Source of the DNA: Diplonema japonicum
Lineage: Eukaryota > Protista > Euglenozoa: Diplonemea
Length of the DNA: 64,000 nucleotides
Reading direction: 5' to 3'
Assembly (NCBI GenBank): GCA_964019335.1
Contig: OZ025672.1
Location: forward strand, 62,001-126,000
Numbering within the stretch: the first letter of the stretch is position 1; every line of letters begins with the position of its first letter. The translations under genes were made by a program, and so were the position numbers. Below the pieces are notes generated by a model that was not told where the DNA came from, did no database searches, and saw nothing but the letters and a program-made list of their open reading frames with translations. Positions 27,824-46,348 of this stretch are shown in pieces.

Positions 27824-30800
27824 CTACTGCTTCATTGCCAACTTGTTGATAAGCTCATAGGTGGCGACAGCGTGGCGGAGTTGGAGGATCTCAGGGAAGT
27901 GCTTATCGAACCACTCTGAGCCACCCACATCCATGTCCTGGTAGCTGATGTAATCCTTGAGGGACTCCGTTTCAGGGAAGTTCACGTCCGGTCCAGAGAG
28001 GGGTCCCACGATGAGCTCGCGAAGAGCACCTGCGAGGTGTGAGTACTTAAGGTGCCCTGAGCTCCTCCTGATCTCCATTTCTTCTTCTTCGTCCAGATTC
28101 GAGGTGTACTTCCTGTTTACTCTGTGGAAGGCACCACCGCCCGACATCAAGCTCTCTGCCAGCAGAAACATCGCCTTCAAATGTGCTACCTTCCCATACT
28201 TCACGACTGCCGGTGTGACCTTCGCAGCGATCTCCTCCTCGTTGAGCCCCATGACATCTTTGAAGAACCCTGTGAGCGCGGTGTCCGCCTTCAGCACGTT
28301 GCCCACCGCCGCCACAAAGTGGATTGCATCGCCAACTAACCTCAGCAGCATCGATAGCTGCTGCTGCGTGTTCAGCTCCTTCGTTATCGATTCCTCCACC
28401 GCTGTCGGTAGGGTTGCTACCTGGTCCAGGTTCGCCAATGCAGCAAGCCCACCACGCTGCCGTACCTCACCGTGGTACTCAAAGTGCGCCACTTGCAATT
28501 GTAGAGGCATCTTCCCTGTAAACACCGTTGTCATGAGTTCGTTCTCAATGCCTTCCATGTCGTACCCCAGGTACCCATCGTCGAAGTCGACCTTGTACTT
28601 GTACAGCAGCGGGATCAGGTCACGTTTTGTGTCGTACTCAATGAGTAGCCTTCGCGACACTTCAGGGGGCGTCTCGTAGCTGAGCGTCGGGATGGCGACT
28701 TCGCCTTGTTCAGGGAGAACGTCCTTTAGCTGCTCGACGACTTGGTTGTGCGTCCTGTGGAGAAGGCCTGCCAGCTGGATGGTGCACAGCCCAGGTGCAT
28801 CAACCTCGCCAGGCACCATAGAAGGGAGCGAGAACGAGATGGGTGACTGCGGCGACAGCAGCACGCGCTCACCCTCAGCGTGTCCTTGGAGATTCACATT
28901 ACCCTTACTATCGAGGAATGGGTTGGCTTGACACTCGTGCAGGTTTGGCAGGAGGGGCATAGCCTCATTGAACACGTTGCAGTACCCTTGAAGTGCCTTT
29001 GCGGCCTTCTTCCTGTCGGTCGCGTTTACCCTAGCAAGGACTGCTGAGGCAGGGATCTCATGTGCCTGCAACCTTGAGAGATCGTCGCCTTCCAGTACCT
29101 TGAATATGATCTGCTGCCACTCGAGAATATCGGCAAGGTACCTGATGATGCACAGTTTTTGCTCGTTTTCGCAGACGGCCGCCAGGAGGGGGTGCTTTGT
29201 GGCGTTAATGCTGTTGGACTCAAAGAAGTTCTTAAAGTGCGCGACAGTGACCATGGGGCGCGTTTTCCACAGCCCCTTGCTGCAGAAGATAGCGTCCACG
29301 GACGAATCGTTGAACACCTTGCGGATGATTTCCTCCCTGCCTCCCTTCCCAACGATGCCGTAGGCAGACTCCAAAATGGGCTTTGGGCTTTGGAAGAGGG
29401 GCGCAACAACGTCCTCAGCGGCCTTCTCGAACTTGATCATCGAAGTGACATTGGAGAATGGTGCCGTTAGACCTTGTAAGAGGAGACCAACACGGTCGAT
29501 TGCCACATGTGCTAGCAGAAGCATGTCACTTGCATTCATCCTGGGAGCTGCTCCTCTCAAGCCATCGTAACTGCTCAACAGTCTTGCAGCTAGATATTTA
29601 GGTGTGATCTTTTCATGCAATTCCGCAGGTTTAGCATCCCCCATCCTCCCGACAACGAGAGCTGAGTAAAACATCACCCTCAACACGCAGCACGTGATTC
29701 GCGACAAGTTGGTACCAGGTCTCATCACCTCGATAGCTGAATCAGGGACGTACCCAGGCTCGCTCTTCATCTTGCTGAGGTTTTTCTTCACATCTTGGAA
29801 ACCACCCAAACGGACGTTGCCTGATACAGAAACGTGGTTTGTACCCCCAATCCTGGCCCTGCAGCCAGGGTGGCTGCACACACCGATCTGCATGGGACCG
29901 CCACACTCACCGATGCTGTACAAATGACCTTGTGGGCATCTGTACCAAGTCACGTATTCATTCAAGCCCTGCATCACTGCCGTGATCTCAGTGCTGATCG
30001 GCATGGAAGGCAGGAACGTCGTTTTAAGCAGACGAGGGTGAGTAGCCGCAAGGTTTAGGAAGGTACCCTTCACCTTTTGAGACAACAATGCCACTTGGCA
30101 GACCAGCGGGTAAACTGAGTTTAGCTGCATCGGGAGTGCTTTTGGAGGCCAGCAGAACGGCCTAATTTCAACACCCTCGGTTCCCCATCCCCTCCCTGTT
30201 GGTCCCCATCCTCCATACGTCAAGAGTGAGGCAAGGGGAGACTCGCCCATCTCTGCCAACCAGGCGCCAACGACCTCACGCCCTGAGAAGTCCTTCCTTA
30301 AAGCGCCTTCAATCATTGTCTCACACAGCACGGCCATCTTCACGTCATGGAGGATGGCAGTATCGTTGAACATGTCCCCCGCCCTTTTCTTGGCCGGTGC
30401 ACCGCCTTTCAGTGCTGTGTTCACCGCCGCCTTTAGGGTGACAAACTGGTCTCGTGAGCTGCACACCAGCGGCATGATCATCGGTAGCTGCACGTCACCG
30501 CTGCAGTTCTCTGCGTAGACTCGGTCGAACTTCACGAACCAGTTGTAGTTCCTCCCGATTTGAAGAAACTCAGTTACACCGCTGAAGCCGCTTTCCTTTG
30601 CCAGTAGACTCAGGACAAACAAACCACACTCACGGATCTCGAGCAGCTTTCTGCTCGTGAGAGAAAGCTTAGGTGAGTGTTTTGGGAGAGGCCGCTTCAC
30701 ACCCTCTTCGACGACGATGGCCGCCTGCTCAGTACATACATCATGCAAAATAATAGAAAACCTGCGCAGTTCGTTTCTTGCTGTGGCAAGAGACAGTAGG

Positions 30801-33800
30801 TAGTCATGCGACAGTGTCTTTGGCTCCCTCAGATGCTCCAAGTCGGCGTCAGTGACCTCGCTGTCCACATCACCAATGTCCTCCAGGTAGCCCAAGATGA
30901 GCACAGCCAGAGACTCCGAGTATTTAGGTCCCATTGGCATTGTCTCGGCCTGCTTCATCGTCTGCTTCAAACCGTCATGAGCCACCAGTGTGTGAAACAG
31001 ACCTCGTCTGATTGGTTCGAGAGCAGGTCCCGAACCCGAGTACAACTTCGGACGCAGGCCACACGCAAGCCTCAAAATGTCTTCATGTACAGCATCCCCT
31101 GCCGGGAGGGCATAGTCGCGCAGGAAAGTCACCAAGAACGCATCTTTCACATTGTTCTCTGGCTTCACAGGTGCACCAACGATCAGCTTCTCCAGCTCGG
31201 CCACCTTATGTTCCAACTTGAACAGGGCAGGGACGTAATAATCCAGCACAGGCACGAGAAGTGGGCTCTGCAACACAACCAGCTTGATGAAATCCGCGAC
31301 CAGTGGCCAGTTCCCAATGTCGCCACCCAGAGCTCGGCAGTCAAGAACAAGAGACGGGTATATTCTGTGCGACCAGTCTGCCAGCTTCTTGAGCCTGCAC
31401 ATGCTATTGATGTATACTTCCATTACTTTGAGGGTTTCACGCACAGTGACTGTCTGCTGCTCATCATGGGGTGTCTTGTCAATGATGTCGATGATTTTGT
31501 CTTGTGCATCAGGCTTCACTGACGACAGCAGCGAGGACATGTGGAAGAGCCTATGTTCGTTGACCCACAATGCAGCGTGTAGGGCAAGGGGATTTGAGAG
31601 CACTGCTGGGTTCGTTGCCTTCAAGACAGCTGTATGTAAAGCCAAGACCTGCGTCCATTCTAGTCCCTGGAACTGACGAGCCGACGAAGTTACCAAGTCT
31701 GCCAGGTACTTCGTGTGGGACCCACCTGCCCACTCGTTCCACTGCGAGACGAGTGTTGGGCCGTGCAGCTGTTCCGCCATACCAGCAAGGCCTTCATAAT
31801 TAATCGACGACTGCTTCATGATCGGCTCACGAGCCTTCTCGTGCATCTGGATTAGACGGTAACTGAACGGAAACTGCGCCTTCAGCACCCTCACAGTACC
31901 GGTGTTCTTTGTTTCGTCCGCTTTCGGCATCCCATCGACGGGCGCCATGTCCACGATGACCTCCTCACTAAGCACAGTCCGCGCAAGCTCATACCACAAG
32001 GTCTCACTCTCTGCGTTCAATGTGAACAAGTTAAAGTCTACGTTAATAACCCTCAGAATGTGTGCAGTGATCTGAATGAGTAAGTACTCTACAACGTGGT
32101 TCACAGACGCACGAAGCGACCCAGAAGACAGCTCGCCAACTGCCAGGTCCACATGATGCTGCAGCCCGGTGGCGCCTACGGTGCACTTATCCTTCAGGAT
32201 CTTCTTAATGAGACCAAGCACCAACTCCAAGAACTCCTTCCTCTCAAATAGCTTGCGCACAAAACGCGTTCTCTCGACGAAGGGGATGACGTGTCCCGTG
32301 CTGGGTTCCTGCAGCAAGGACAGTGTTGTGTTCAATTTGCCAAGCACGGTGGCAGAAATGTCTAGCTCCTCTTTCTCGACGAGATCGATGAGGGAGTAGT
32401 ACAGCATATTCGCACTCGATTCGTCGGCTTCACTCACGTCATCAATGAAATAGGTGCTCCAGTTCTTACTGTAGTCGATGGTGAAATGCCTGGTGCATTT
32501 CTTGGCACCGGGCGGCGTGTGTATCAAAAACAGCACACGCTTCTGCTCGGTATCATTTCGCTTTTTGCACCATTTGACGTAATAGCTCTCGGCCACACGT
32601 TTCGCGTGGTCGATTGTGTTCTGCGGTGTAGTCATAGGGTCGCATTGCATTATGAGCATATTGTTTTCTCCATCGAAGAACTTGTCAAGCAACGACGTCA
32701 GCCGGTGCTCGCTGCCAATGTCTGAGAGCCTCAGCAACCTCCCTTCGACTGTTCCCTCACGGACCTGCTCCAAGGGACTGTATGTCACGAGCGTGAGTAG
32801 GTCACAACCTTCCACAGACTTGAGAAGCGTATTCAGTCCGCTACGCTCTTTGATGTATTCGGGATGTATCTCACGCAGTGTGCTCGATTGCATCATGGCA
32901 ATCGGCATGGCAATGTGCACGAGGCGCTTCTGCAGCTGTTCCAGGCTCTCCTCGGGGAAGCTGAACACCAGCGAAGGGAGCGTACTCTTAATGAACCCGT
33001 AGAACACGTTGCTGGGGTTTTCCAAAGTGGTTTCTTTGCACAATGCCAATGCCCACTCCTTGAGGAGCACATATTTCTGCCTTTGCGCATCATTCAGACA
33101 GTCATCGAAGTTTAGCACCTGCTTCTCAAATCTATTCAACAGGGGCAAGTCAAGGTTGTCATAAGCGTGCTGCTGCTCGGCAACGACGATGATGCGGAAG
33201 CCCCGCTTCACGGGGCACAGCTGGCTCCTAGACCCGATCGCAAGGCGGAGCATGCGTTTTTCTCTGCCAGTTTCGAGCACCGTCCTCACTACGTACCTCT
33301 GGTTCAGCACATCGTAGAGGGACTCGTAGATGCTGTCGTGGTTATGGAGCAGAACAACCTTCCCGCTTGCCATGGCGGCCTTCACCTTGTTCACCTGCTG
33401 GATGAGGTGCAGGTCGTGGCCGTCGTCTTCGAAGGTGCTGCCCACAAGGACTTCAGTGTTCTCATAGTCAATGAGTCCCATAGAAAACAGCAGAGGAAGA
33501 GCAGCGCCGTTCTCCGTCAGTACCATCAAGTGACGCGCATCGGTGTCATTCAAGTTCGCAGATATGAGGCGCGATGGCGACGGGATGAACGAATCCAGAG
33601 CACTTTCTTCTTTGAAGCACTTGGCTCCGAACGAAGAGCATACATTCTGCACAATGGTGGGACTTCCCCCGAAGTTTCGCAGCAGCGCGTATGTCATGAG
33701 CTGTCTGGAGATGGGACCCTCTTTGCCACCGGGCTCCCTCATGTGCAGGAGATCGCCGATTAAGTCCGTGTCACGGTCGACAAAGTCCATCATTTCCGGC

Positions 33801-36800
33801 CCCTTTTCGCACAGATCATTTAGGGCATCCTCAGTGATGATCCTAAACGGGACAAGCATCTTAGACTCGATGCTGGCCGTAAGGTCGTAGACAGACATCG
33901 TCTCGGTTTCTACTGTGAAGACACTGTCTTTACTAATGTCAGAGATGGTGATATAGCGGGTCTTGTAAACAGCGCAGTTAGTGAGCATCTGCATGCGGGG
34001 TACGATGCAAGCACGTGGGAAGAGCAACGCACGCTCACGTTTCAAGAGCTTCACCGTCTGGTAGTAGTCACGCATCCCCACAAAGTCCCTCCCCATCTGG
34101 TTAGTGTACACCATGTGGTATGCAACACTCAGCTGGTTCAGCAACCTTTGCATCCCCTCACCTGCGGTACCCAGGATGTACTCGCCTGTCAGATGGATGT
34201 CGTCACTGGCTGGCTCCGGTCTCTGCAGGCAGATCGCTCTGTTCATCTTGGCAGCATCAAGAGTCCAGTTCGACAGCCCAACTATCCCGATGGGCGGGTC
34301 GACCAAGATGCCGTGCAGTACCTTGAGAGGCATGTCTGGGCTGTGCTCTGCCAGACCAACTTCGTCGAGCAAGAGAACCACAATTGTTCTCTCTGCTTTC
34401 TTCTGGAAGCTGCACGCAATGTCATACTGGTGCCTGATGCCAGCTGCTGTAGAAAGAGGCGAGCACTGGTAGGGGAAAATGTGTAGAGCGGGGAACTTTG
34501 CCCAGAACTTGTTGGTCGACTGGTCGCCCTTCAAGTTATTCGAAAGGACTTGCAACGTGAGGGTCTTCGAAGACCCGGGCTTACCCACAACAAAAATAGG
34601 GACTCGGTTGAAGATGCAGATCAGCGTTACATAAAGGTTCTCTTTAAGTGCCTGGTTCATTGCGATCCCGTCCTCTACGGCGAGTTTCCCGCAGATGGCG
34701 GACATCGTCATCTTGATGATCTTAGCCATTGCGCCACAGGGGAACAGGTGCTCGAACCCCTCGAACTTGTTCATGCCGTGTCTTAGGGAATCAAGTAACT
34801 TTTCCCTGTGTTCATCCGAACTGAGCCTAAAGTAGAACACATGGGCTATCCCAAGTACTGCAGGTGACGACCAAGCATGGCGCCCTGGTACAGGCTTGCC
34901 CGAACCGTACTTTGCGAACCACTTGCTTAGCTTGAGAGCCCTCTTAAGATCTCTGAGTGATACCACGGAAGGATCTCCTTCGACTTCACGGACATAGGAC
35001 TGTGCTCTCATCAGCATGAGGGAAATAGCTTGCTGCCCTTCCTTGTCGTGCACGTACACGGCTACCATTGCCTTGATATACTTCGCTTCGACAGTTTCGG
35101 ACAGGGAGCCGAAGTCAAACACGAACTCCTGCAGCCTCGTGGGGATCGGGTGCACCCTGTACACAAGGTTCTCTAAGGGGTCCACAGCAACATCTGTTCG
35201 AGTAGGCGGCTTGTACGCCAGTCCAGGTGCACTGTCAATGTGCTTTCGCATACGGTATGGGTTCGCCGCCGCCAGGACATGTATGTTGTTATGGATAATC
35301 TTTCCGTACAGCGTCCTGCCGACAATGACCTCAGCAATAAGCCCCATGTGCTGGCAGGTGTTTACTTCATCTAGGAACACATACACTCCTTTTGCCTTCT
35401 TCGAAGTAATGAGGGCATTCGCATCTGAGAAGACCTTGAGAATGTCTGCCTCCGTGGTGCCACCATGCACATCAAGGATCAGCAGTTCCGCCTCCAGCCA
35501 TGCGCACACGTAACGGAGCATGTGGGTCTTACCGCAACCACACTCGCCCATGAGTAGGATGGGAACACCACATCTCACCCTGACAAAAACGGCAAGCATC
35601 TTCAGAACCACATCCCCGGTCATGCAATACGTGCCGCCGAGCAGCCTTGCCGCTGATGCAGCATCCCTCACAATGCCTGTCAAGGCACTCAATGCTTCGT
35701 GCGGACTCTTTTCGTTTGCGCCGATCGACACGTTCAAGGTACTATTCTCAAAGTATGAAAGAAGTCCTGGGTGCATTTTCTTCTTCAGCGCAGTAACGTT
35801 AACCGCCAGCAAGTGAAGTCCTGTCCTACTGGTTGTAGTCAGCAGTGCCTCGTGGTTGGCTTCGTTCCATGTTTTCAGGTCGCCAAGCGGCTCATTGGTG
35901 AGAGGAATCATGTTGTCCTCCCGCTCCGTGCTTTTGGCTAAGTCAGGTTTTTCTTTTGCCAACTGGTCCCATGTAAGGAACTCGATGGAAATCGTACCAT
36001 GGGGCAGTTCCCATGGGGCGAGCAGAGACTGCCCTGGTTTCGCCATATATGTAATATCTATCTTGCTGCCGATTGCATTAGACATCACCCACCTGTCGTC
36101 TAGGAAGTGGATATACGACGGGTCCAGGTACGACCCCATCCTGAACACAGGCTGGCCGTTGCTCCTAAACTGGCATCTCTTGTAGTAGTTTTTCACAGTC
36201 CCCAACACGCTCCCGTCGGACCCTTTGCTCACTTCCGCTGATCTTAGCCACATCAGATCGTCGCCCTTCACCCGGCGCTGGCGGGTGGCAAAGTCTGCCG
36301 CGGTTCTGCAAATAAAGTCGAAAGCTTCAGCTCTAATCTGGTGTGGCGTATCGCGGAACAGACTGCTTGAAAGAAAGGTGCTGTGGGCCATCCAGTAGAC
36401 AACATCAACGAAGGACCACACGGCCCATAGGGATACAGGCTCAGACAGGTTCGCAGCCCTTGAAATCATCCCCAACGTGTTTTCCTTAAGCTGGAAGGAC
36501 ACAGATCCTCCGGCATTGAACTTCTTTGTTTCGTCCACCATTGACATGATGCGTGCCACAAACACAAGCCTGTTGTATGCTGTCGAACTAGTTGTCGTCA
36601 TGACACTGTTGTATATAGTGCCGTCGCATCGGGCGACAGTGAAGTTCGTGCGCATGCCGTTCTTGATTTCGTTGGAATTGATCTTAAAGGTGTCCTTGTT
36701 GACGACGCTGACCTTTTTGTTGAGGAAGCTGAAGATCGGAAGCTGCGCTGCAAGAGGAGCAGTCTCCACAGCGATGTTCACGTTGGAGTCTAAGAACCAT

Positions 36801-39800
36801 CTGATCCCCTTCTCGGCGTCATAAAGCGACCCAAGCACCAGCAGCTCGAACAGGATCACAGTAACGGACTCATCGACACTGTCGGCAACGTCTACATGTA
36901 ACACGTATGCCTCGTCCTTCTTGACGGAAAGTGCTTTCTTGTTCGCTTCAATCAAAGTGATGAGGTTGCCTGTCTTGCACGTCTTGTGTAACGGGACATG
37001 CACAATCTTCAGCGTCCCTGCATCAGTGTTGATCTGGAAGGTCTTCCCTGCCCCTGCTGACTTTGCCGTGTACACTGTCACCTTCTTCTCTCCTTGCGAC
37101 ACGGATACCCCAACATTCTGCAGCTCCTCGACTGGGAGGGCTGCCGACGCCTCCCTCCAGTGGGCCAGCTGCCTCACAACGTAATTATCACGCGAAGAGC
37201 TCACAACAAGGAGTGCGTTCTTTGCCTTCGGTTCCAAATCAAGAAGCAGCGAGGTCACCTTGTGGTAGTCAGTCTCCTGCATCTCCTCAATACCCACCAA
37301 GCAGAACAAGTACCCTGCCGCTTCGCTCATGGCCCACCTCAGCAGCAAGTTGCAGATTTGCTCTGATGTTGTGTCCTCTGTGACCCACAGAAGCTGATGC
37401 CACTCAGGCAACATGCCTCTTCTAACATACGCCGACAGCACAGACGGCAGTACCATGTCCGTCACAATGAGCTTCACACCCGAGTCAGACGTGAGCCCTG
37501 TGAAGTCGATTTCCCTCGTAGGGAAAGTGTACCACTCAAGGGGCGCAACCGTCATCATCATGTCAATTTTGCTGATGAAGCCAGCTGCCGTTTTGGCGTC
37601 GTCACCACTCCACGTCTCCCGGAGCAGTTCTGTGACATCTTTCAGTGGCCCCGCTGGGAACAGCGTGTTCTTGATCTCTAGTGTCAACCCCTCGATTCCC
37701 GTCTCGGAGTCTTCGGCACTCATACGGAGCAGCTGTCGCAGCATCACAGTGTTGATCAGAGGGTACCGCATCCTCATCGCTTCCACAAGGTCACTCCATT
37801 CATTCAAACTTTTCTGAGCTCGCTTTACTTCTTCGTGGATGTCCTTCGAAGCCAGGCTGAACGGTACTCTCGCTGCGAAGCCCTGCCTCTCAGGGTGCCC
37901 CGATCTTTTTAACTTTAAGAACTCTATGCATAGCTCACGAACCCAACCAAACTTGGCGACGAACTCTTGCACGTGGACCACATCGTCGTCCCTCCCTTTC
38001 GCAAGAACAACCGCGCTCTGATAGTCGAGCAGTTCGCCCACAGTTTGTTTGGAATCAATAACCTTGCCGTTCCTGTCTACCTTGTACTCTAGCCACATAG
38101 TGACCTCTGAAGCCTTTACATCGCCCGAGATCACCCACTCCGCCTGCCATGACGGCAGAGACAGATTGTGTAACCTGTTCAAGGCTGAGGCGTCACCATC
38201 ACCAGAAAGTAACTCTGCTAACGCAAGCTGAAGGGGGCTGAGCTCAGAGATGGCCTTCGCAGTTGCAACAGAAGTGTGGAGGCTAAGATGGCCCAGACAG
38301 TCCACAACCTGTGTGATAGTGTCCCGCATGAAGCTGGCAGCGCTGTACAGCAGTTTGTGCAACGATGTCCTCACGCCTGACAACTGACTGAGGATGCTCT
38401 CGTTGGGGTGGCCAGGACCAGTCTCCTCTGCCACCCACAGCTCAGGAGGACATTCCATCTCGGGACGCCCCATTGCCATCTCAATGGAACTCGCGAAGTT
38501 CTGGTTGCTGGCGTGGTCCGAAAGCCACTCTAAGAAAGGGCCGTTCTGGTTCAATGCCTCCAGCAGCTCGCAGCTGATGTCCAATATCCTATCGTCAATC
38601 TGGCCCAGCGTGTGGGTCATACTTGTGAGATTTTGCAGCGTGAGCTTGTCATAGTCGAACTTAGACACTTCTTCTATGAGCGTGCCAAGGTTCTGGCGCT
38701 CTGCGTCGACTGTTGCTTGCCCGCTGGGTCGCACCAAAGCAGATAGGTAATCCACATTTCTAAGGATCTCGCCGCTGCTGCCCTGCAGGCGTTGCATCCT
38801 ACGGAACATAAGAACTGTTTCTGTCAATTGACTGAAAAAGTTGTTGTTCAACCTCCGTCCTGTCGCTGGGTAGTTCGTGACGTCTACTTCTTCTTGGAGT
38901 TCCCTGCAGACAAGGCAGAACTTACGCAGTGCTTGCGACTCGTTCCAAGTGCCGCCTGTCGTGGCTAGGCTGACGTGCGATTCGGGGGTGACCATTTCGG
39001 TGAATTGCATGAAATCTGTGAAGCTCATGGTCTTGTTATCAATTTTGTCGTACAACTCAAGCAGGCGTGCGCGTGCTTGGGCAATTTTTGTGTCAATGTC
39101 CGCCTCCTTGATGGAGTTCCAGACGAAGTGAAACACGCCGCTGCCGCATTGTTCATGCAACCATCTGGATGCTCGCATAAAGACAGGGGGCAGCTGCTGC
39201 ATCCCCTCAACTGTGTGAACAGTCTCCTTTCTGAAAACGTACATGATGTCCCTGACAGGAAGGGCGCCCCACCTCTGGCGAATGTCGGAGATGAAGTTGC
39301 TCAGGTCATTTTCCTCGAGGAGCGCGTGCGCCACATCTTCGAAGCACTCTCCTTCAGCGTTCAAAGAGCTCAAAAGAGACCTGGCGTGTTCAATACTGTC
39401 GTCTCCATGTGCAATCCCAATAGCCTTCCAAATGCTAACCACGTTTTCCTTATGCTTGATGATATTCGTCACAACAGTGGTTGGCAGTGCATTGGTGAGC
39501 AGGTTGGAAGCGCCTACATTGAACTTGTTCCCCACCGCCTTGCACATGGACGACAGTGCTTCCCAGTTCTCACCGCTCGTGAAGGTTCCAGGCGATCTCA
39601 CGATCTTCGTGTACCATGGGAGGAGCTGCTTCCACACGTTGTTGAACTTTAGTAACTCCCCAACCTCCGATTCCTTTCCGAGGCACTCCAACATATTGAT
39701 CTTAGCCCCCATCAATGCGTACTGGACCGCCCTGTCATCAACTGTGAACCAGTCACGTGGCTCGGCAGCATTGCAGTCCGTCAACTCCACGAACGTGTCG

Positions 39801-42800
39801 TCAAAGTCCAGCTCCGTCATGGCTTCCTTCCCAGTAATAATTATATTCTCCATCAGCGCCTCTGGGATTGCGTGTGGTTCCATGCTTTCATCATGTGGCT
39901 CTATGAAGCGGGACAACCCCACGCCCACAGACTGCAGAAAGCCTTGCCTTTGGCTCTTGCTTTGGGTACTGAGGCCGAGGGTCCACCTCTGCATCGCAGC
40001 AGCAACGTGCTTGAGCTCCTCGCACTCGCTGTTCTCATAGTACTCTATCCAAAGTCGCAGCGTCCCACGGAGGACCTTCTCATTCGACATCTTCTCATTT
40101 TCCATTTCCTTCGGGATGGCAGCAACCAGCCATACATTAAGGGCATCTTGCTCTTGAGGTTCAAGTTTAAAATCGGCAGTGTGAAGCGAGAGGGCGGTCT
40201 GCACCAACGTCAAGAGCTCCTTACAAGGCCTGACTCGGAACCCCTGCGCCTGTAGCAGCTTCTCCAGTGCGACAGGGCCAAAGACGTCAGGAACATCTTC
40301 TGTGAACCTAATGAGCTCTTGCAGAACAGCACGCTGCTCATCTTCAGAGGGAAGCCAGCGCACACGTGATATTGATGCTTCGATGGCATCAAGCAGGCCG
40401 AGGGGCTTCTGCGGCAATGACGACAAGTTGTAAGGAAGGTCGTTGTCCTTAGTATCGTGCGACACGCTGGGTGTCCTGTCTAGGTCCAATGACACAACTT
40501 TCCTCGCCAAGGCATTCGTTATGATCCATCGCAGGCAGTGAACTGAAGGGGCCGCGGCGATCAGCGTCAAAATGTGCGGCAGGTTTTCGTCCATGACGAA
40601 CTCTGCGTACTGCTTGTACGATGCTTCCTCCGAATCGTTCCGACCCTTCAGTAGAGTCAGCCTCGACGTGCGCACTGCATCGATGATGCCTGCGGAGTGT
40701 ATGTTGTTGTTCTTGCTGAGCAGCGTAATCTTGTCGGCGAGTTCCTCGATCGTTTGCTGGTTATCGGTGTATACACTATTTGCCTGTCTCAATGTGAATG
40801 GTGGTGCAATGAGCCTCATCCTGAACTGTTCGCACAAAATGAAGCTGCCATCCTGGTTAGGCATGATGGAGCCTGGTACACACAGCTGCGATACACTCCC
40901 CATCCCATCTTTCCAAGCATGGGTGCTGTTCCCACGGCCCAAGATAATCTGTGTCTCGACCGACTCAAAGGTATGGCTTCTCTTTCCCATGTTGTAGACA
41001 GCTCGAATGCAATTGTTGTTGGTGTCGGACACGATCAAGACCGACTGCATCGTTCTGTGCATCTTGTCCTTTGCATCGTACTGCCCCATGAGTACAGCAA
41101 GGTTCTTCGGGTCAGACTTTTCAACCGCTTTCATGAATTCTTCCCTTGCTTTCACATCTGGCTCCAGGGGCGTCTCACGCGGGACTCGTGTGAAGGCGAG
41201 ACCGCATGGTGTGTCGAACCCTGACTTTGGATTCTTTGTTGGCGCTGACTTATTCACATTTCCGAAAATAGTACGCACACGGCCCAGAGTACCTTTGGTA
41301 TTGATATCCACTCCACGCAACGCGTGACGGTCGATAAAGAACAGCATTTCTATGGAGGGCTCGTACCACAAGCAACGAACTTCCACCGTCTTCGCACTTT
41401 TACAGGGCCCGTCACACGGTACGCTCGCCCCAGTAGTGACTGTTTCCACCTTCCCACTCTTCAGACCTGCAACTATCCTACGAATGCAAGAGCCATCGGC
41501 GATGTAGTAGGTGGTCTGCCCCCTATATTCCACAGTTGTTATGCTTCGGATGCTTGTAAAGGCCGCAGTCTTAAGGACGCCATCTTTATTGCCCCTGACC
41601 CCTGGCTGCCCTGCAGCGAGGGAAATGGACCACCCACTGTCTTTGAAACGCATTACCCTCAAACAAGCATTGCCGGCATCGGAAACCAAGATCTCTGTCT
41701 CGGAAATCTTCACTAGGGCGTTGGGGCCCCTCAGGCGCGCCTCGTCTATTTGCCCATCGACAAACCCGGAGCCGTTGGCCCCTAAAAGTGTCACCAGTGT
41801 TTGCTGTCGAGTGTTTAAGCACCTGATTTTGTTCGTGGAGGGTTCTGTGAAGATGATTGTGCCGTTTTCCATCGTAACAGACGAACTGGGCATGAGGGAG
41901 GCATAGGGGTCCTTCTTAAACATCAGGGGGCCGTCGATACTGGCTAGCTTGGGAGCACGGTGAAATCCTGCAACAGTAGTGATGCCAAAGGACTGCCCAT
42001 GGTTGTGCCCGATGTAAGGTCCGTACAGCTCAACAAGCGCCTTTGTTTCCTCACGCGTCTCTCGCCCGCGCTTTGCCAACTCTTTCGCTGTTGAGTACAA
42101 ATCCTGCATCTCGAGCTTCGTCACGCTATCATCTATGCCGCTAAGGATCTCGAGCGAAGCTTGCTGGCACCTCTTTAGCACACCCCATCCAGGTACCCCG
42201 CTTTCAGTGGCAGCATGCTGCGCACCAGTGACCATGCCACGCACCCAAGCACGCTCATCAAGGACAACCTTTCGCGCAACAAATAAACGATGCAGCGTCG
42301 CCTCAGCGCTCTTGACAGACTTTTCCCACGTTACCTCCCTCTCCTGAAGTGTCTCGGACCTCTCCAGGTTTCCCCAAGCAACGTGAGCTGCTTGATCTAC
42401 ACCCTTTGAGGCTTCAGACTGGTCCTTGACAGCCGCAGGTACCTTGAAGTCGGGGAGGTGGTTTTTCTGCAAGGCGAAGTTTTTCAAAGGTTTACCGAAG
42501 TCTGACTCCAGAATATCTTCATCCCCGAGCAGGCCTAAGATGTCCGTGAGCGTCGTGTACCTGAAAGAACTGACTGGCGCACATCTATCGAACTCGTACA
42601 GCCATTTCACAAGCCTTTTTGTGAAGAAGCTAGCAGGAGACGCCCCGAACTGCTCTAACCTCTCCGTGCTGAAGGAGCACTCCAGTAGCTTCCAAAGGAC
42701 ATCTGCCACATTGCCACGATTAAACTCCTCGGACAACTCCAGGTATTGCCCTACATGCCCCAGCAACACAAGGAGGAGGTCTTCGTCGCCCTTGGGGATG

Positions 42801-43354
42801 AAGGTCTTTGCCGCAAGGGCGTAGTCTTTAATACAGCATTCAAGTGCAGGATAGAGAGGCAGGCCTGCTGAAAGCAGCTGAGCATGTTGCGCGGATAGAT
42901 GAACAGGCTCTGCATGAAACAGCGACCACATGCACTTGAAATACATATTAAAGACACGGAGCCCCAACATTACAGACTGGCTGGATTGGACGAAAACGGC
43001 ATTCTCATGAACGATATTGACGGCGAAGGTTTGCAGGGTGTCATCGAAGATGCCTCCGTCGCACTTCACAGTCCATGACATTGCCACTGGGTCATTGGAC
43101 GGGAGCTCGAACGTGCTGTGCCAGCAGTTCGAAAACTCATTCAACTGAAGCTGTGGAACCTTAACAGCCAGCTCTGGGGTAAAGTTTACCACCAAGGGCC
43201 CCGTCACATGATCGAACCCTTCGTTGGCAACATACACCGTCACCCTCTTGTTGCTGTCATTTTGCTTTGCGGCATGAATGAGCGACGTGTTTGCAGTCGC
43301 ACTCCTGCAGTGCGCCAGCAGCTTCCAGTCTTCCTGCTCAATAGGATCACCCAT
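27824..43354 (-). CDS. RNF213/mysterin-like giant AAA+ ATPase with RZ finger and NHL repeats (~5176 aa)
   Basis: RNF213-family motifs in order: SAGAGKT, MGECGCGKT, FLDEVNT, LVYRVHPIP, VGKPGSSKT, LLDEVGLAEHSPDMPLKVLH, SNWTLDAAKMNR, RDYY, LYDVLNQRY, PLLNRFEK, then RZ finger YRCPQGHLYSIGECGGPM..C..C..RIGGTNH. ATG 43354 preferred because the track start overlaps the upstream gene. Confidence 0.93.
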   Translation of the reverse strand: MGDPIEQEDWKLLAHCRSATANTSLIHAAKQNDSNKRVTVYVANEGFDHVTGPLVVNFTPELAVKVPQLQLNEFSNCWHSTFELPSNDPVAMSWTVKCDGGIFDDTLQTFAVNIVHENAVFVQSSQSVMLGLRVFNMYFKCMWSLFHAEPVHLSAQHAQLLSAGLPLYPALECCIKDYALAAKTFIPKGDEDLLLVLLGHVGQYLELSEEFNRGNVADVLWKLLECSFSTERLEQFGASPASFFTKRLVKWLYEFDRCAPVSSFRYTTLTDILGLLGDEDILESDFGKPLKNFALQKNHLPDFKVPAAVKDQSEASKGVDQAAHVAWGNLERSETLQEREVTWEKSVKSAEATLHRLFVARKVVLDERAWVRGMVTGAQHAATESGVPGWGVLKRCQQASLEILSGIDDSVTKLEMQDLYSTAKELAKRGRETREETKALVELYGPYIGHNHGQSFGITTVAGFHRAPKLASIDGPLMFKKDPYASLMPSSSVTMENGTIIFTEPSTNKIRCLNTRQQTLVTLLGANGSGFVDGQIDEARLRGPNALVKISETEILVSDAGNACLRVMRFKDSGWSISLAAGQPGVRGNKDGVLKTAAFTSIRSITTVEYRGQTTYYIADGSCIRRIVAGLKSGKVETVTTGASVPCDGPCKSAKTVEVRCLWYEPSIEMLFFIDRHALRGVDINTKGTLGRVRTIFGNVNKSAPTKNPKSGFDTPCGLAFTRVPRETPLEPDVKAREEFMKAVEKSDPKNLAVLMGQYDAKDKMHRTMQSVLIVSDTNNNCIRAVYNMGKRSHTFESVETQIILGRGNSTHAWKDGMGSVSQLCVPGSIMPNQDGSFILCEQFRMRLIAPPFTLRQANSVYTDNQQTIEELADKITLLSKNNNIHSAGIIDAVRTSRLTLLKGRNDSEEASYKQYAEFVMDENLPHILTLIAAAPSVHCLRWIITNALARKVVSLDLDRTPSVSHDTKDNDLPYNLSSLPQKPLGLLDAIEASISRVRWLPSEDEQRAVLQELIRFTEDVPDVFGPVALEKLLQAQGFRVRPCKELLTLVQTALSLHTADFKLEPQEQDALNVWLVAAIPKEMENEKMSNEKVLRGTLRLWIEYYENSECEELKHVAAAMQRWTLGLSTQSKSQRQGFLQSVGVGLSRFIEPHDESMEPHAIPEALMENIIITGKEAMTELDFDDTFVELTDCNAAEPRDWFTVDDRAVQYALMGAKINMLECLGKESEVGELLKFNNVWKQLLPWYTKIVRSPGTFTSGENWEALSSMCKAVGNKFNVGASNLLTNALPTTVVTNIIKHKENVVSIWKAIGIAHGDDSIEHARSLLSSLNAEGECFEDVAHALLEENDLSNFISDIRQRWGALPVRDIMYVFRKETVHTVEGMQQLPPVFMRASRWLHEQCGSGVFHFVWNSIKEADIDTKIAQARARLLELYDKIDNKTMSFTDFMQFTEMVTPESHVSLATTGGTWNESQALRKFCLVCRELQEEVDVTNYPATGRRLNNNFFSQLTETVLMFRRMQRLQGSSGEILRNVDYLSALVRPSGQATVDAERQNLGTLIEEVSKFDYDKLTLQNLTSMTHTLGQIDDRILDISCELLEALNQNGPFLEWLSDHASNQNFASSIEMAMGRPEMECPPELWVAEETGPGHPNESILSQLSGVRTSLHKLLYSAASFMRDTITQVVDCLGHLSLHTSVATAKAISELSPLQLALAELLSGDGDASALNRLHNLSLPSWQAEWVISGDVKASEVTMWLEYKVDRNGKVIDSKQTVGELLDYQSAVVLAKGRDDDVVHVQEFVAKFGWVRELCIEFLKLKRSGHPERQGFAARVPFSLASKDIHEEVKRAQKSLNEWSDLVEAMRMRYPLINTVMLRQLLRMSAEDSETGIEGLTLEIKNTLFPAGPLKDVTELLRETWSGDDAKTAAGFISKIDMMMTVAPLEWYTFPTREIDFTGLTSDSGVKLIVTDMVLPSVLSAYVRRGMLPEWHQLLWVTEDTTSEQICNLLLRWAMSEAAGYLFCLVGIEEMQETDYHKVTSLLLDLEPKAKNALLVVSSSRDNYVVRQLAHWREASAALPVEELQNVGVSVSQGEKKVTVYTAKSAGAGKTFQINTDAGTLKIVHVPLHKTCKTGNLITLIEANKKALSVKKDEAYVLHVDVADSVDESVTVILFELLVLGSLYDAEKGIRWFLDSNVNIAVETAPLAAQLPIFSFLNKKVSVVNKDTFKINSNEIKNGMRTNFTVARCDGTIYNSVMTTTSSTAYNRLVFVARIMSMVDETKKFNAGGSVSFQLKENTLGMISRAANLSEPVSLWAVWSFVDVVYWMAHSTFLSSSLFRDTPHQIRAEAFDFICRTAADFATRQRRVKGDDLMWLRSAEVSKGSDGSVLGTVKNYYKRCQFRSNGQPVFRMGSYLDPSYIHFLDDRWVMSNAIGSKIDITYMAKPGQSLLAPWELPHGTISIEFLTWDQLAKEKPDLAKSTEREDNMIPLTNEPLGDLKTWNEANHEALLTTTSRTGLHLLAVNVTALKKKMHPGLLSYFENSTLNVSIGANEKSPHEALSALTGIVRDAASAARLLGGTYCMTGDVVLKMLAVFVRVRCGVPILLMGECGCGKTHMLRYVCAWLEAELLILDVHGGTTEADILKVFSDANALITSKKAKGVYVFLDEVNTCQHMGLIAEVIVGRTLYGKIIHNNIHVLAAANPYRMRKHIDSAPGLAYKPPTRTDVAVDPLENLVYRVHPIPTRLQEFVFDFGSLSETVEAKYIKAMVAVYVHDKEGQQAISLMLMRAQSYVREVEGDPSVVSLRDLKRALKLSKWFAKYGSGKPVPGRHAWSSPAVLGIAHVFYFRLSSDEHREKLLDSLRHGMNKFEGFEHLFPCGAMAKIIKMTMSAICGKLAVEDGIAMNQALKENLYVTLICIFNRVPIFVVGKPGSSKTLTLQVLSNNLKGDQSTNKFWAKFPALHIFPYQCSPLSTAAGIRHQYDIACSFQKKAERTIVVLLLDEVGLAEHSPDMPLKVLHGILVDPPIGIVGLSNWTLDAAKMNRAICLQRPEPASDDIHLTGEYILGTAGEGMQRLLNQLSVAYHMVYTNQMGRDFVGMRDYYQTVKLLKRERALLFPRACIVPRMQMLTNCAVYKTRYITISDISKDSVFTVETETMSVYDLTASIESKMLVPFRIITEDALNDLCEKGPEMMDFVDRDTDLIGDLLHMREPGGKEGPISRQLMTYALLRNFGGSPTIVQNVCSSFGAKCFKEESALDSFIPSPSRLISANLNDTDARHLMVLTENGAALPLLFSMGLIDYENTEVLVGSTFEDDGHDLHLIQQVNKVKAAMASGKVVLLHNHDSIYESLYDVLNQRYVVRTVLETGREKRMLRLAIGSRSQLCPVKRGFRIIVVAEQQHAYDNLDLPLLNRFEKQVLNFDDCLNDAQRQKYVLLKEWALALCKETTLENPSNVFYGFIKSTLPSLVFSFPEESLEQLQKRLVHIAMPIAMMQSSTLREIHPEYIKERSGLNTLLKSVEGCDLLTLVTYSPLEQVREGTVEGRLLRLSDIGSEHRLTSLLDKFFDGENNMLIMQCDPMTTPQNTIDHAKRVAESYYVKWCKKRNDTEQKRVLFLIHTPPGAKKCTRHFTIDYSKNWSTYFIDDVSEADESSANMLYYSLIDLVEKEELDISATVLGKLNTTLSLLQEPSTGHVIPFVERTRFVRKLFERKEFLELVLGLIKKILKDKCTVGATGLQHHVDLAVGELSSGSLRASVNHVVEYLLIQITAHILRVINVDFNLFTLNAESETLWYELARTVLSEEVIVDMAPVDGMPKADETKNTGTVRVLKAQFPFSYRLIQMHEKAREPIMKQSSINYEGLAGMAEQLHGPTLVSQWNEWAGGSHTKYLADLVTSSARQFQGLEWTQVLALHTAVLKATNPAVLSNPLALHAALWVNEHRLFHMSSLLSSVKPDAQDKIIDIIDKTPHDEQQTVTVRETLKVMEVYINSMCRLKKLADWSHRIYPSLVLDCRALGGDIGNWPLVADFIKLVVLQSPLLVPVLDYYVPALFKLEHKVAELEKLIVGAPVKPENNVKDAFLVTFLRDYALPAGDAVHEDILRLACGLRPKLYSGSGPALEPIRRGLFHTLVAHDGLKQTMKQAETMPMGPKYSESLAVLILGYLEDIGDVDSEVTDADLEHLREPKTLSHDYLLSLATARNELRRFSIILHDVCTEQAAIVVEEGVKRPLPKHSPKLSLTSRKLLEIRECGLFVLSLLAKESGFSGVTEFLQIGRNYNWFVKFDRVYAENCSGDVQLPMIMPLVCSSRDQFVTLKAAVNTALKGGAPAKKRAGDMFNDTAILHDVKMAVLCETMIEGALRKDFSGREVVGAWLAEMGESPLASLLTYGGWGPTGRGWGTEGVEIRPFCWPPKALPMQLNSVYPLVCQVALLSQKVKGTFLNLAATHPRLLKTTFLPSMPISTEITAVMQGLNEYVTWYRCPQGHLYSIGECGGPMQIGVCSHPGCRARIGGTNHVSVSGNVRLGGFQDVKKNLSKMKSEPGYVPDSAIEVMRPGTNLSRITCCVLRVMFYSALVVGRMGDAKPAELHEKITPKYLAARLLSSYDGLRGAAPRMNASDMLLLAHVAIDRVGLLLQGLTAPFSNVTSMIKFEKAAEDVVAPLFQSPKPILESAYGIVGKGGREEIIRKVFNDSSVDAIFCSKGLWKTRPMVTVAHFKNFFESNSINATKHPLLAAVCENEQKLCIIRYLADILEWQQIIFKVLEGDDLSRLQAHEIPASAVLARVNATDRKKAAKALQGYCNVFNEAMPLLPNLHECQANPFLDSKGNVNLQGHAEGERVLLSPQSPISFSLPSMVPGEVDAPGLCTIQLAGLLHRTHNQVVEQLKDVLPEQGEVAIPTLSYETPPEVSRRLLIEYDTKRDLIPLLYKYKVDFDDGYLGYDMEGIENELMTTVFTGKMPLQLQVAHFEYHGEVRQRGGLAALANLDQVATLPTAVEESITKELNTQQQLSMLLRLVGDAIHFVAAVGNVLKADTALTGFFKDVMGLNEEEIAAKVTPAVVKYGKVAHLKAMFLLAESLMSGGGAFHRVNRKYTSNLDEEEEMEIRRSSGHLKYSHLAGALRELIVGPLSGPDVNFPETESLKDYISYQDMDVGGSEWFDKHFPEILQLRHAVATYELINKLAMKQ

Positions 43355-43419
43355 TTGTAAGGACAGAGCAACAGTGCCCGGCTGCACGAAAAGTTTTCTG
43401 TGGTGGTAGGTAATATGAT

Positions 43420-44382
43420 TCACACCAAACAAAAACAATACATCCAAAAACAGTTAATGACCACCGCGAAGGCGACCAAGGGGAAAAGTGGTACCAGGGC
43501 CGCGGAAGCAGCCCTGTAGCAAGGGGTGTCTTCAAAGTTGAAGCCGATACAGGACTTATTGTAATACACGCAACCATCAGGACACTGTAGACAAGCTTGG
43601 GCAGGGATGTCTACTTGACACGCTGCGCAGTCGTGCGCGGTGGCTGTGTCATCAACTATGACGAAGTCGAAGCTTGCATCTTGGAAGTTAGGCGGAGGGA
43701 GTGCACGCATGAAATCCTCACCTGCCGTGGGGCCCTTGTAGAACTTGGATGGGATCACAATATTATCACCGCATTGAAATGGATCCCACCCTGCGAGCAC
43801 TGGTGTGCTCGTCGTCACAGTGGCCTTTGTTTCAGGGTCGTACACAACCTGCTTCCCCCCGTCGCACGGGTTCTGCATTTTGATCCCGCACGCGTCGTAC
43901 TGCTTTCCTGCCGTGTTGTCGTCATCGTCCCAAAGCTTGTCACTAAACGACTTACAGACCCGCCATTTATACAAGGGGGACGAAGAAGTCCTATTCTCGA
44001 CAGGGGGGATTCCATTTCTCGGTGAGCCTTCCAGAACTTTGAACCTATACCGTGGCTCGTCAGGATCGCAAGACATGCAGTACCAGTGTCTGATGCTGTT
44101 GTATGTAATCTTTATGGAGTGCTTCGCGTGGGAGCAGGACAAACCCAAGTCCATGAGCGAGTTGAACTGGTCGTAGTTCTCCTGGTCGGAGGCGGGAATG
44201 CAACACGACTTCGAGTTATACCAATGACAGAACTCCAGCCCCATCGGTTCCTGTGGGATTGTTGTTGACGCGATGCATTCCTCTTCAGTGTACTCCTCAA
44301 TGTGCAGCTCGCCCTGCGTATGGACAAATCCTTGCTGCTGCCCAACAGCCGCTCCTAGTACCGTGGCTATGACCAGCGACAT
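43420..44382 (-). CDS. Folate-receptor/NPC1-N-like Cys-rich surface protein, probably GPI- or TM-anchored
   Basis: Signal from ATG 44382; FCHWYNSKSCC...C...WYCMSCDP...VCKSFSDKLW...C cysteine pattern; hydrophobic C-terminus. Confidence 0.75.
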   Translation of the reverse strand: MSLVIATVLGAAVGQQQGFVHTQGELHIEEYTEEECIASTTIPQEPMGLEFCHWYNSKSCCIPASDQENYDQFNSLMDLGLSCSHAKHSIKITYNSIRHWYCMSCDPDEPRYRFKVLEGSPRNGIPPVENRTSSSPLYKWRVCKSFSDKLWDDDDNTAGKQYDACGIKMQNPCDGGKQVVYDPETKATVTTSTPVLAGWDPFQCGDNIVIPSKFYKGPTAGEDFMRALPPPNFQDASFDFVIVDDTATAHDCAACQVDIPAQACLQCPDGCVYYNKSCIGFNFEDTPCYRAASAALVPLFPLVAFAVVINCFWMYCFCLV

Positions 44383-44515
44383 TCCGACCAGTCTTTGTGT
44401 GTTATTGATACCAAGGAAGAGAAAGGGCGAAATGAAGGGGAGAGGAGGGGGGGAGGGGAGGAAAAAAAACACAAATATCCGCATTAGGAAAACAAATTCA
44501 CGCTAATGCTCTTTA

Positions 44516-45053
44516 CTATTCCACCTTCCGCTTTGCTCCCTCGTCACGCTCGAATTCCTCTTTAATCCTCTTTATCTTCATCAGGATCTCCTGTAGCTTG
44601 GGGTATTTCTTCAGTATTTCGGCAGCCTTTCCGGGTTCTGTAGTAGGTTAAACAAGTTCTTTACATACCTCTGGCGATGGTTTGGAAGTGTGAGGCGATC
44701 TCCATGTCCTGCATGTCGTCGAGGAGGGAAGGGTCTTTCCGGGCGTAGGGGAGCATGGCTTGGACCTGCGCCTCATCGAAACCAGGAGTGCCTTTCAGTC
44801 TTTTGAGAAGCTTCTTGTCTTGGTAGTGGAAGTCGTGGTTTTGCTTTTCAGTCACTTCAGGCTCTTCGGGCTCCGGTTCTGGCTCAGGGTCATTGACTAG
44901 CACAAATCCTGTTTCTTCTAGCTCCTTCTGCATGTTGGCTTCCGCCTCTGCTGCCTGCTTGAACACTGCCTCCCTCGCAGCCTCCCTCGTTGTCGTCTCC
45001 CATCTCCTCGACTTCACCATCCCAGCCCGGAGTCCATACCGTAGCGCCTTCAT
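44516..45053 (-). CDS. Small STI1(DP)-like protein with probable mitochondrial presequence, 2 exons
   Basis: MKALRYGLRAGMVKSRRW leader. The 31-nt intron 44638-44668 completes DPSLLDDMQDMEIASHFQTIAREPGKAAEILKKYPKLQEILMKI. Confidence 0.7.
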
Positions 45054-45085
45054 ATTGTCACCCTCTTCTGTATTGTAAGTGTGAG

Positions 45086-46348
45086 TTACTGCGAGCCCCA
45101 CTTCTCTACCCGCCACCCACCATTCTCCTTGAGCTCCTTGACCCTCCCCTCCGTGAGGACCTCTTCCAAGGCACTTACGGTGTTTTTCATCATCAACGCC
45201 GGACCGCAGATGTACACAGCCGCAGGGGCAAAGGACACGATGTCTTCTTTGTCCTGCAGAAGCTTCTTCCAGATATACCCTTGAGAAGACAGGCACGGGC
45301 TGAAGCGCGCTGCCTGTTGCAAGGTATGTTGGTGAGGGATATCTTCTGCCGTCCTGCAGCCATGGTACACCCAAGCAGACGAGGGCGGCATGCCTCGCAG
45401 AACTCGCATGATGGGCGAAACACCAACACCAGCAGATATCAAAAGGCAGCGGTCAGCTGAGGTAGGGCTTCGAAAGGGAGTTAGGGGGATGTTGGGGGTA
45501 GGGCCCCCGAGGAATACGGTGTCGCCTTTCATGAGCTTCTTCAATGCACCTGAAGAGAGGCCTTGTCTTGAGGTGTTTACAAGGACCTCTCCCACGCTGC
45601 CGACTGCCGCATTGGAGAAGAACCTCGCTTTGAGCTGAGGGAGCGCTGATAAGAGCCTGCCCACAGGCGGGCATGCAGAGGGGTACTCTTCCAAGACATC
45701 CAAAAGGCTCACATGCTTTCCGGATGAACAGTATTTCTGACGGTACTCGCTGAGACCTGCTGAGGAGGCAAGGTGCTTAAGGGCAGTAGCCTCGTCGGGA
45801 GAAGCAAAAGCCGCAAGGATGTGCAGGACAGGCTGTCTGACAGAAGCACGCGAGGATAAGTCCGAAAAATACATTAAAATGGTCACCAATGACAAAGGTG
45901 TGTTTTGCGGTATCCAATAAGGATAGGTGGGTGCGTCTGCACCGTCGGAGAAGGTACTGGGCAGCACCTTGATAGTCCTGTCTGTGTAGTTCAGCCTCGT
46001 CATGAGGCGTGACACGACTTCGGGTGGGTTTGGGGTAAAGATGCTGATATGATCTTGCAGGGTGCTCTCCAACATGATGCTCTTCAAGCAACCAAACTGT
46101 GTTATTTCGCAGACCGATACACTTGCAAGTCCTAGGACTCCCAAGGCGCACTCTCCCTCCTCTTCGACACCCACTACTTTCACACAATTCTGTGGCATCT
46201 CAAAAGGCCCAGCGGTTTTGGCGATTCCTCTCTCTTGTACTTCTTCCTTGAAGCCTTCCTCTTCCACCTGTTCATAGTACGTGTCCCAAACACACTTCAG
46301 GCACCCGCTCCCGCAGCAGTCCGCCTCCTTGGGGGGCTCTTTGACCAT
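45086..46348 (-). CDS. CCGSGC oxidoreductase-like domain fused to a CPR/MTRR-type FAD- and NADPH-binding reductase
   Basis: PPKEADCCGSGCLKCVWDTY; LPQLKARFFS, GLSSG, LISAGVGVSP, YHGCR, VYICGP, EKWG. Confidence 0.85.
   Translation of the reverse strand: MVKEPPKEADCCGSGCLKCVWDTYYEQVEEEGFKEEVQERGIAKTAGPFEMPQNCVKVVGVEEEGECALGVLGLASVSVCEITQFGCLKSIMLESTLQDHISIFTPNPPEVVSRLMTRLNYTDRTIKVLPSTFSDGADAPTYPYWIPQNTPLSLVTILMYFSDLSSRASVRQPVLHILAAFASPDEATALKHLASSAGLSEYRQKYCSSGKHVSLLDVLEEYPSACPPVGRLLSALPQLKARFFSNAAVGSVGEVLVNTSRQGLSSGALKKLMKGDTVFLGGPTPNIPLTPFRSPTSADRCLLISAGVGVSPIMRVLRGMPPSSAWVYHGCRTAEDIPHQHTLQQAARFSPCLSSQGYIWKKLLQDKEDIVSFAPAAVYICGPALMMKNTVSALEEVLTEGRVKELKENGGWRVEKWGSQ

Follow-up and report, generated by a model that had tools for sequence, protein, structure and literature searches.

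An intact, transcribed giant AAA+ protein of the RNF213 family, with a predicted RZ finger and no detectable RING, in the diplonemid Diplonema japonicum

Can a ubiquitin ligase (E3) of the RNF213 type be built without the RING that gives its family a name, and does such a protein occur far from the animals? The question is raised by one gene of Diplonema japonicum (Euglenozoa: Diplonemea). Its coding sequence lies on the minus strand of a 64,000-nucleotide stretch of contig OZ025672.1 (positions 62,001 to 126,000 of the forward strand; hereafter the window), at 27824..43354, with the first ATG at 43354 and the stop at 27824-27826, and encodes an RNF213-like protein of 5176 aa. An earlier, sequence-only reading had described an intronless frame with the RNF213 AAA motifs and an RZ finger, had seen no RING, and had put the gene forward as a candidate for a novel immune system. 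Our analysis indicates that this is probably an intact and transcribed RNF213-family giant AAA+ E3 with a vertebrate-like, ATP-gated RZ mechanism, for which the RING is an optional cassette.

Sequence comparison and modeling make the molecular identity secure, and the protein is assigned as a true RNF213-family giant AAA+/RZ E3 homologue. In a phmmer search against the Protein Data Bank (PDB), its C-terminal 2676 residues matched human and mouse RNF213 in three stretches (E 1e-119). A profile of eight homologues gave one continuous alignment from AAA3 to the C-terminus of both mammalian proteins (E 1e-269). The next best family in the PDB comparison was midasin, matched only over ~45 residues around a P-loop. 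The AAA core (residues 2574-3464; 32963..35635, on the minus strand like all features of the protein below) aligns with human AAA3-AAA4 and onward, matches Pfam AAA_5, AAA and AAA_7, and contains a PLLNRFEK motif at residue 3404. The motif series that had been read from the sequence is present, and its key residues align with human ones. In AAA3, K2609 of Walker A GECGCGKT (35525..35548) falls on human K2426 and E2663 of Walker B VFLDE (35366..35380) on human E2488; in AAA4, K2930 of GKPGSSKT (34562..34585) and E2998 of LLLDE (34361..34375) fall on human K2775 and E2845. Mutation of the human Walker A and B residues of AAA3 and AAA4 abolishes coat formation (PMC11549300). With its Walker residues kept, each of the two modules is predicted to be ATP-competent. 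A GAGKT P-loop at residue 2101 precedes the profile alignment, which spans AAA3 through the C-terminus. The C-terminal domain (CTD; residues 4515-5176; 27827..29812) is homologous to that of RNF213 by both searches: the third phmmer stretch reaches human residue 5101 (tagged numbering), and the profile alignment reaches 5235 of 5247.

The RZ finger (residues 4461-4514; 29813..29974) matches Pfam PF20173 at E 4e-17, in the place where it had been claimed, and its core reads CPQGHLYSIGECGGPMQIGVCSHPGCRARIGGTNH at 29834-29938. Residues were assigned by alignment to mouse RNF213, with their roles taken from PMC11549300. The putative zinc ligands are C4473, H4477, C4493 and C4498, the predicted nucleophile is C4484, the Cys of GECG, and the predicted base is the terminal His, H4507. 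By these assignments the finger is complete, with four zinc ligands, catalytic Cys and His. All six residues are invariant in 20 divergent homologues.

The finger is embedded in a helical E3 module which, with RZ and the start of the CTD, covers residues 3825-4699 (29258..31882) as delimited by superposing an AlphaFold2 model on the human E3 module. The model, of residues 3600-4799 (predicted local distance difference test, pLDDT, 76), is all-helical apart from RZ, and RZ itself forms a short helix followed by β-strands, as reported for the human domain (PMC11549300). Only RNF213 chains were significant against this model in a Foldseek search of the PDB (E 5e-15 to 5e-11). VIA-align superposed model positions 226-1100 on human 3706-4744 in 9jwg_A with a Z of 18.6 over 710 residues, at a root-mean-square deviation of 12.8; the runner-up to the RNF213 E3 module had a Z of 7. 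At the sequence level, a single-sequence phmmer search with the E3 region aligned RZ alone to RNF213. A search with the E3 module returned 1004 representatives at E<=0.001, just six of them aligning full length, so the centre of the module evolves fast.

The protein lacks both RING and U-box along its entire length, in agreement with the sequence-only reading, which had seen no C3HC4 RING between AAA and RZ. A regular expression for C3HC4 RINGs found no match in the whole protein, and a Pfam search of the E3 region and CTD, at a threshold as loose as E<=10, detected neither domain. No stretch of 60 aa from the AAA ring to RZ contains more than 2 Cys; the protein-wide maximum is 5, at the AAA3 P-loop. 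Where, then, would a RING have been? Two homologues, P0031 (Pinguiococcus) and P0058, carry RINGs, identified by Pfam in P0058 and by regular expression and precomputed Pfam in P0031. A local-pair (L-INS-i) alignment places both in the same columns, as an insertion of ~70 residues flanked by conserved anchors, RRGL... upstream and VLILGYLEDI downstream. At these columns the D. japonicum protein and its clade have just KYSESL (KYSESLA at residues 4144-4150; 30905..30925). The RING-to-RZ distance is 507 residues in P0058 vs 508 in human. By linear offset from the VIA anchor, a placement coarser than residue level, residue 4147 would correspond to about human 4028, within the human RING (3997-4035). 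In P0069 a U-box lies about as far from AAA3, a placement by distance and not by alignment to the RING columns. When the RING/E3 region of P0058 served as query for homologues, P0058 alone was recovered. Because a RING occupies shared columns in P0031 and P0058, KYSESL stands there in the diplonemid protein and P0069 has a U-box, the site looks like an optional cassette slot. As observations on these two proteins themselves, P0069 also carries WWE, PDZ, UBA and MIB_HERC2 and is without RZ, while the RZ of P0031 has its zinc-binding His motif replaced by C-x-C.

The gene is intact and transcribed, in a diplonemid-like euglenozoan with spliced-leader (SL) trans-splicing. The minus-strand frame is open without interruption through 27824..43447, or 5207 codons, which gives the previously claimed 5176 aa from the first ATG. 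With uniform codon use assumed, the chance probability of a 15.6-kb open frame is ~e^-250. The N-terminus lines up with the starts of three full-length homologues (P0001, P0004 and P0008). Contigs from four public runs in two studies were compared with 39500-45400. In all four runs and both studies, fragmentary contigs identical to the genome cover the gene over 39500-43398. We take these contigs as RNA because, in the same runs, neighbouring genes show SL ends and the removal of a 31-nt intron. One contig stops at 43398 with 7 unmatched letters, just past an AG (43399-43398) behind a pyrimidine-rich tract, and the SL acceptor is therefore placed 43 nt upstream of the ATG (acceptor and 5' untranslated region, 43355..43399). 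Depth on the gene is low, ~2-7 vs 20-300 on its neighbours, and shifts stepwise at gene borders. No joints occur within the gene in the RNA contigs over 39500-43398; the description of the gene as intronless stands for that part and covers that part alone. The leader itself is well represented in the genome. Its exon followed by GT is found in 157 copies vs 0 for a control, dispersed and many near contig ends. It reads ...ACCAACGATTCTAAAGCTACAGTTTCTGTACTTTATTG and then GT (copy at L028 1487-1520), which we take to be very close to the diplonemid leader.

How such a protein would work is suggested by its mammalian counterpart, in which the RZ Cys, the RZ His and the Walker motifs are required and the RING is not (PMC11549300). 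ATP binding switches on the E3, and ATP is bound only by AAA3 and AAA4 (PMC12075652). When its RING is removed, mammalian RNF213 retains full activity toward both bacteria and itself (PMC11549300, PMC7311170). From this work (PMC11549300, PMC12075652, PMC7311170) we infer ATP-gated transthiolation through C4484. As in vertebrate RNF213, ATP bound by the AAA core would activate the E3 module, and a thioester of ubiquitin with its conjugating enzyme (E2~ubiquitin) would dock on the helical E3 shell and CTD. Ubiquitin would then move to C4484 of the RZ finger by transthiolation, and the finger would hand it to substrates, possibly non-lysine or non-protein acceptors. The RING of vertebrates and of a few protist homologues would be an optional cassette at one fixed E3 site, outside the conserved catalytic machine.

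Several observations weigh against this proposal. The E3 module is very divergent in its middle (14% identity to human), so that E2 may dock in a different way. A zinc-binding CxxC of RZ is widened by a 2-residue insertion to Cx4C (CSHPGC). AAA1-AAA2 and the stalk gave no significant RNF213 match by phmmer or profile search. The transcription evidence uses contigs whose run type is off record, though their behaviour is RNA-like, and the read-contig comparison covered 39500-43398, the 5' quarter of the gene. Finally, biochemical and cellular work on RNF213 homologues is confined to animals.

The N-terminal arm is predicted to hold an NHL propeller. An AlphaFold2 model of residues 440-960 forms a β-propeller (pLDDT 81; predicted template-modeling score, pTM, 0.77), and together with Foldseek and the repeat consensus it delimits a six-bladed NHL propeller with a helical insertion at residues ~457-850 (40805..41986). 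For this model, Foldseek ranks the NHL domains of teneurin, SOQ1, NHLRC2 and TRIM71 first in the PDB (E 2e-15 to 1e-8). The Pfam NHL match is sub-threshold (E 0.12), and the repeat consensus is visible in the homologue alignment. The first 2500 residues gave no similarity to RNF213, the sole phmmer match being the NHL of SOQ1 (E 2e-5); the initial ~130 residues are β-rich. Accessory modules that differ from the animal ones, as the sequence-only reading had proposed, are thus found: an NHL propeller vs the human CBM20. We suggest that the propeller is a likely target- or surface-recognition module in place of that CBM20. A CBM20-like N-terminus was considered and is unsupported: hhalign of the clade N-terminus against the CBM20 of P0095, which sits at the same N-terminal position (residues 35-110), gave a probability of 0.2%. 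Pfam found no CBM domain in the protein, and a carbohydrate-binding domain is hinted at only by a language model, which points weakly to CBM53 (score 0.89).

Is this architecture new? The sequence-only reading had put it forward as a novel system, and that claim falls. An AAA-core search returned at least 1106 database proteins at E<=1e-5, across most eukaryotic supergroups. Domains were counted by regular expression and Pfam in the best 120 of these 1106, where 72 have RZ (regular expression), two RING, four U-box and eleven NHL (Pfam), and 114 lack both RING and U-box. The best 120 include Diplonema, a choanoflagellate, green algae, mosses, a haptophyte, dinoflagellates, Amoebophrya, a stramenopile, a chlorarachniophyte, Thecamonas, a fungus and invertebrate animals. 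Most of these 120 nearest homologues are AAA+RZ proteins without a RING, many of them bearing NHL, and the gene is therefore read as one orthologue of a widespread, unstudied family and not as a new system. Modules are swapped among the protist RNF213-like proteins, as P0095, P0069, P0031 and P0058 illustrate. A phylogeny of the AAA core, which had been suggested as a check, was built with FastTree from 124 rows, vertebrates left out. It places the D. japonicum protein in a fully supported nine-row clade with DIPPA_15027 of Diplonema papillatum, nested in a 53-row clade with Salpingoeca and Cymbomonas. DIPPA_15027 (P0004, a 'hypothetical protein') is also the closest named relative among the database matches. 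This clustering and the trans-splicing agree with a host distant from animals, as had been supposed. Searches of the literature turned up no account of RNF213 homologues outside animals, and the papers found treat RNF213 as vertebrate or mammalian. Ahel et al. 2020 place RNF213 in 'all vertebrates', and a ZNFX1 preprint traces the RZ domain back to choanoflagellates. By these sequence counts the RING-less AAA+RZ architecture is not peculiar to this genome and belongs to a widespread family, undescribed in the literature searched.

Enumeration of paralogues, a second check suggested earlier, returned a ZNFX1-like gene, an RNF213-like paralogue and five giant AAA frames. PF20173 matches three places in the genome: the RNF213-like gene, the ZNFX1-like gene on C24 and the paralogue on C104. 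The ZNFX1-like gene (L031 328-6892, minus strand) has a ZNFX1 domain, a superfamily 1 (SF1) helicase (AAA_11/AAA_12), NFX1-like Cys-rich fingers and an RZ finger, the last a strong match (E 2e-21). A frameshift or tiny intron divides the gene into two overlapping open reading frames (ORFs), which were searched singly, unjoined. The paralogue at C104:274139-281956 (L015 6140-10000 and L021 1-3957) has 2606 aa, an AAA core and a weak RZ, in which the catalytic Cys is kept and the terminal His is replaced by Ser. Five more giant AAA ORFs (on C16, C18, C60, C7 and C69; L013-L024) run from ~4100 to >5600 aa and are 24-31% identical over AAA3-AAA4 and the NRFEK region; no RZ or RING was found in them. 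The C16 ORF has SPRY, the C7 ORF combines a sacsin domain with a BMT5-like methyltransferase at its C-terminus, and the C69 ORF is split into two overlapping ORFs.

For the cellular role of the protein, immunity and housekeeping surveillance are about equally likely. As a surveillance enzyme, the ATP-gated RZ ligase would mark lipid droplets, organelle surfaces or ribonucleoproteins, and its NHL propeller would bind RNA or a host protein. Each diplonemid-type lineage shows one conserved orthologue, and the wide eukaryotic spread suggests an ancient core function. The structural neighbours of the propeller include RNA-binding TRIM71/Lin41 and the chaperone-like NHLRC2 and SOQ1. The abstract of a preprint names lipid-droplet and other non-immune RNF213 roles (10.1101/2021.05.10.443411). 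However, the heavy domain shuffling around the core (RING, U-box, CBM20, NHL, WWE/PDZ/UBA) is more typical of conflict-driven systems, and we regard a housekeeping role as plausible but short of probable.

The sequence-only reading had favoured an immune role in tagging pathogens or endosymbionts, which our analysis did not uphold, homology to vertebrate RNF213 being its sole support. By analogy with mammalian RNF213, such a cell-autonomous effector would coat and ubiquitylate intracellular bacteria, endosymbionts or ingested prey. The RZ Cys and His and the Walker motifs needed in mammals are kept here, and what is absent is the dispensable RING (PMC11549300). A ZNFX1-like RZ helicase, counterpart of the other human RZ immune protein, is likewise kept in the genome, and the varied recognition-type modules of the paralogous giant AAA proteins, such as SPRY, would fit an arms race. 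Among diplonemids, some eat bacteria and carry bacterial endosymbionts. On the other hand, the sequence, context and reads of this genome are silent on immunity, and the gene neighbours are uninformative on function because they form a unidirectional polycistron. Expression is low and constitutive-looking in the runs compared, and the best-studied NHL propellers (TRIM71) bind RNA or proteins. Vertebrate RNF213 acts also on lipid droplets and other targets, so homology fails to single out immunity. We therefore hold an immune function to be possible, and put it forward tentatively. A bolder version appears rather unlikely to us: that RING-less RNF213-type ligases are, with ZNFX1, an ancestral surface-tagging immune machine near the eukaryote root, the RING or U-box being an optional cassette, and that the diplonemid protein marks bacteria, symbionts or prey via RZ.

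Either role supposes a working ligase. Could the protein instead be an ATPase or scaffold without ligase activity, recruiting no E2 for want of a RING and keeping RZ as a merely structural finger? Pfam found no recognisable E2-binding domain, and the central E3 module is highly divergent. Against this, mammalian RNF213 without its RING stays active (PMC11549300, PMC7311170), and the invariance of the nucleophile Cys and base His in the 20 divergent homologues is unexpected for a purely structural finger. The C104 paralogue, with its terminal His lost, illustrates what decay looks like. We judge the absence of ligase activity to be improbable. That the locus is no real gene of the organism at all, whether a chance ORF, a pseudogene, a contaminant or a recent transfer, can practically be dismissed given the length of the open frame, a strand and composition matching the neighbours, the SL acceptor, RNA contigs identical to the genome and the strongly supported grouping with Diplonema papillatum. 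The contigs, the shared strand and the clade placement speak against contamination and against a pseudogene, and both were rejected.

The surroundings of the gene are those of a euglenozoan chromosome. All 25 ORFs of at least 250 aa in the window (1-64000) lie on the minus strand, a unidirectional cluster of the kind seen in euglenozoan polycistrons. The window is even in base composition, and the RNF213-like gene matches its neighbours in strand and composition. Directly upstream, ORF 43420-44484 (minus strand) is a gene of 354 aa, SL-capped at 44393 and covered by RNA contigs several-fold deeper; Pfam found no match for its protein. This ORF was considered as an N-terminal exon of the RNF213-like gene and rejected, since the SL ends on contigs show that it belongs to a separate SL-capped mRNA (43439-44393). 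The contig ends at 44393 and 45068 bear the extra letters AATAAAGTACAGAAACTGTA, whose reverse complement is the 3' part of the spliced leader. A highly expressed upstream gene contains a 31-nt GT..AG intron (44638-44668, minus strand; joint 44637 to 44669), backed by one contig in each of the four runs and very short for a spliceosomal intron.

Mechanistic work on RNF213 has so far all been mammalian. The diplonemid gene and its relatives define what appears to be a conserved machine of AAA core, helical E3 module, RZ and CTD, in which the family-naming RING would be a dispensable one-site cassette and the N-terminal sensor would be swapped between lineages (NHL, CBM20). This offers independent evolutionary support for RNF213 working via its RZ finger, and natural RING-less enzymes for studying the minimal mechanism, in a group with a genetically tractable species. 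Whether RZ-ligase cell-autonomous immunity predates animals becomes directly testable. The locus is real and, within its family, ordinary; its value is to draw attention to a form of RNF213 that lacks the RING and is widespread and unstudied.

Comparison with known systems separates partial from full resemblance. Dynein heavy chain and midasin (Rea1) carry AAA_5/AAA_7-type modules in one chain and midasin gives weak P-loop matches, but the likeness covers ~45 residues around one P-loop and both lack an E3 module and RZ. TRIM-NHL ligases (TRIM71/Lin41, TRIM2) and other NHL proteins likewise have a six-bladed NHL propeller, joined in the ligases to a ubiquitin ligase; they are akin to the diplonemid protein through the propeller fold only. 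ZNFX1 shares the RZ finger type, but is an SF1 helicase with NFX1-type fingers and without AAA ring or RNF213 E3 module, and Pfam found neither helicase core nor NFX1 fingers in the RNF213-like protein. Vertebrate RNF213 (mysterin; PDB 6TAX, 8S24, 9JWG) is likewise a giant single chain with Walker A and B in AAA3 and AAA4, the same helical E3 fold, a CTD, and RZ with four zinc ligands, Cys and His at an equal place in the chain. Unlike it, the diplonemid protein has no RING cassette in the E3 module, an N-terminal 2500 residues without detectable similarity, an NHL propeller in the arm where human RNF213 has CBM20 (human residues 378-515), Cx4C instead of CxxC in RZ, ~150 fewer residues between the equivalent of human 3706 and RZ, and no interferon context. 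The closest counterparts are the orthologues P0001-P0008, including DIPPA_15027, unstudied proteins of other species annotated 'hypothetical protein' or 'RZ-type domain-containing protein'. They fall in the same strongly supported clade; Salpingoeca rosetta PTSG_02206 and a Cymbomonas protein are more distant. The orthologues are of the same length class (5183-5501 aa when full-length), have AAA cores 55-60% identical to that of D. japonicum, and share its module order, in which the NHL arm is followed by the AAA core, an E3 module without RING, RZ and CTD.

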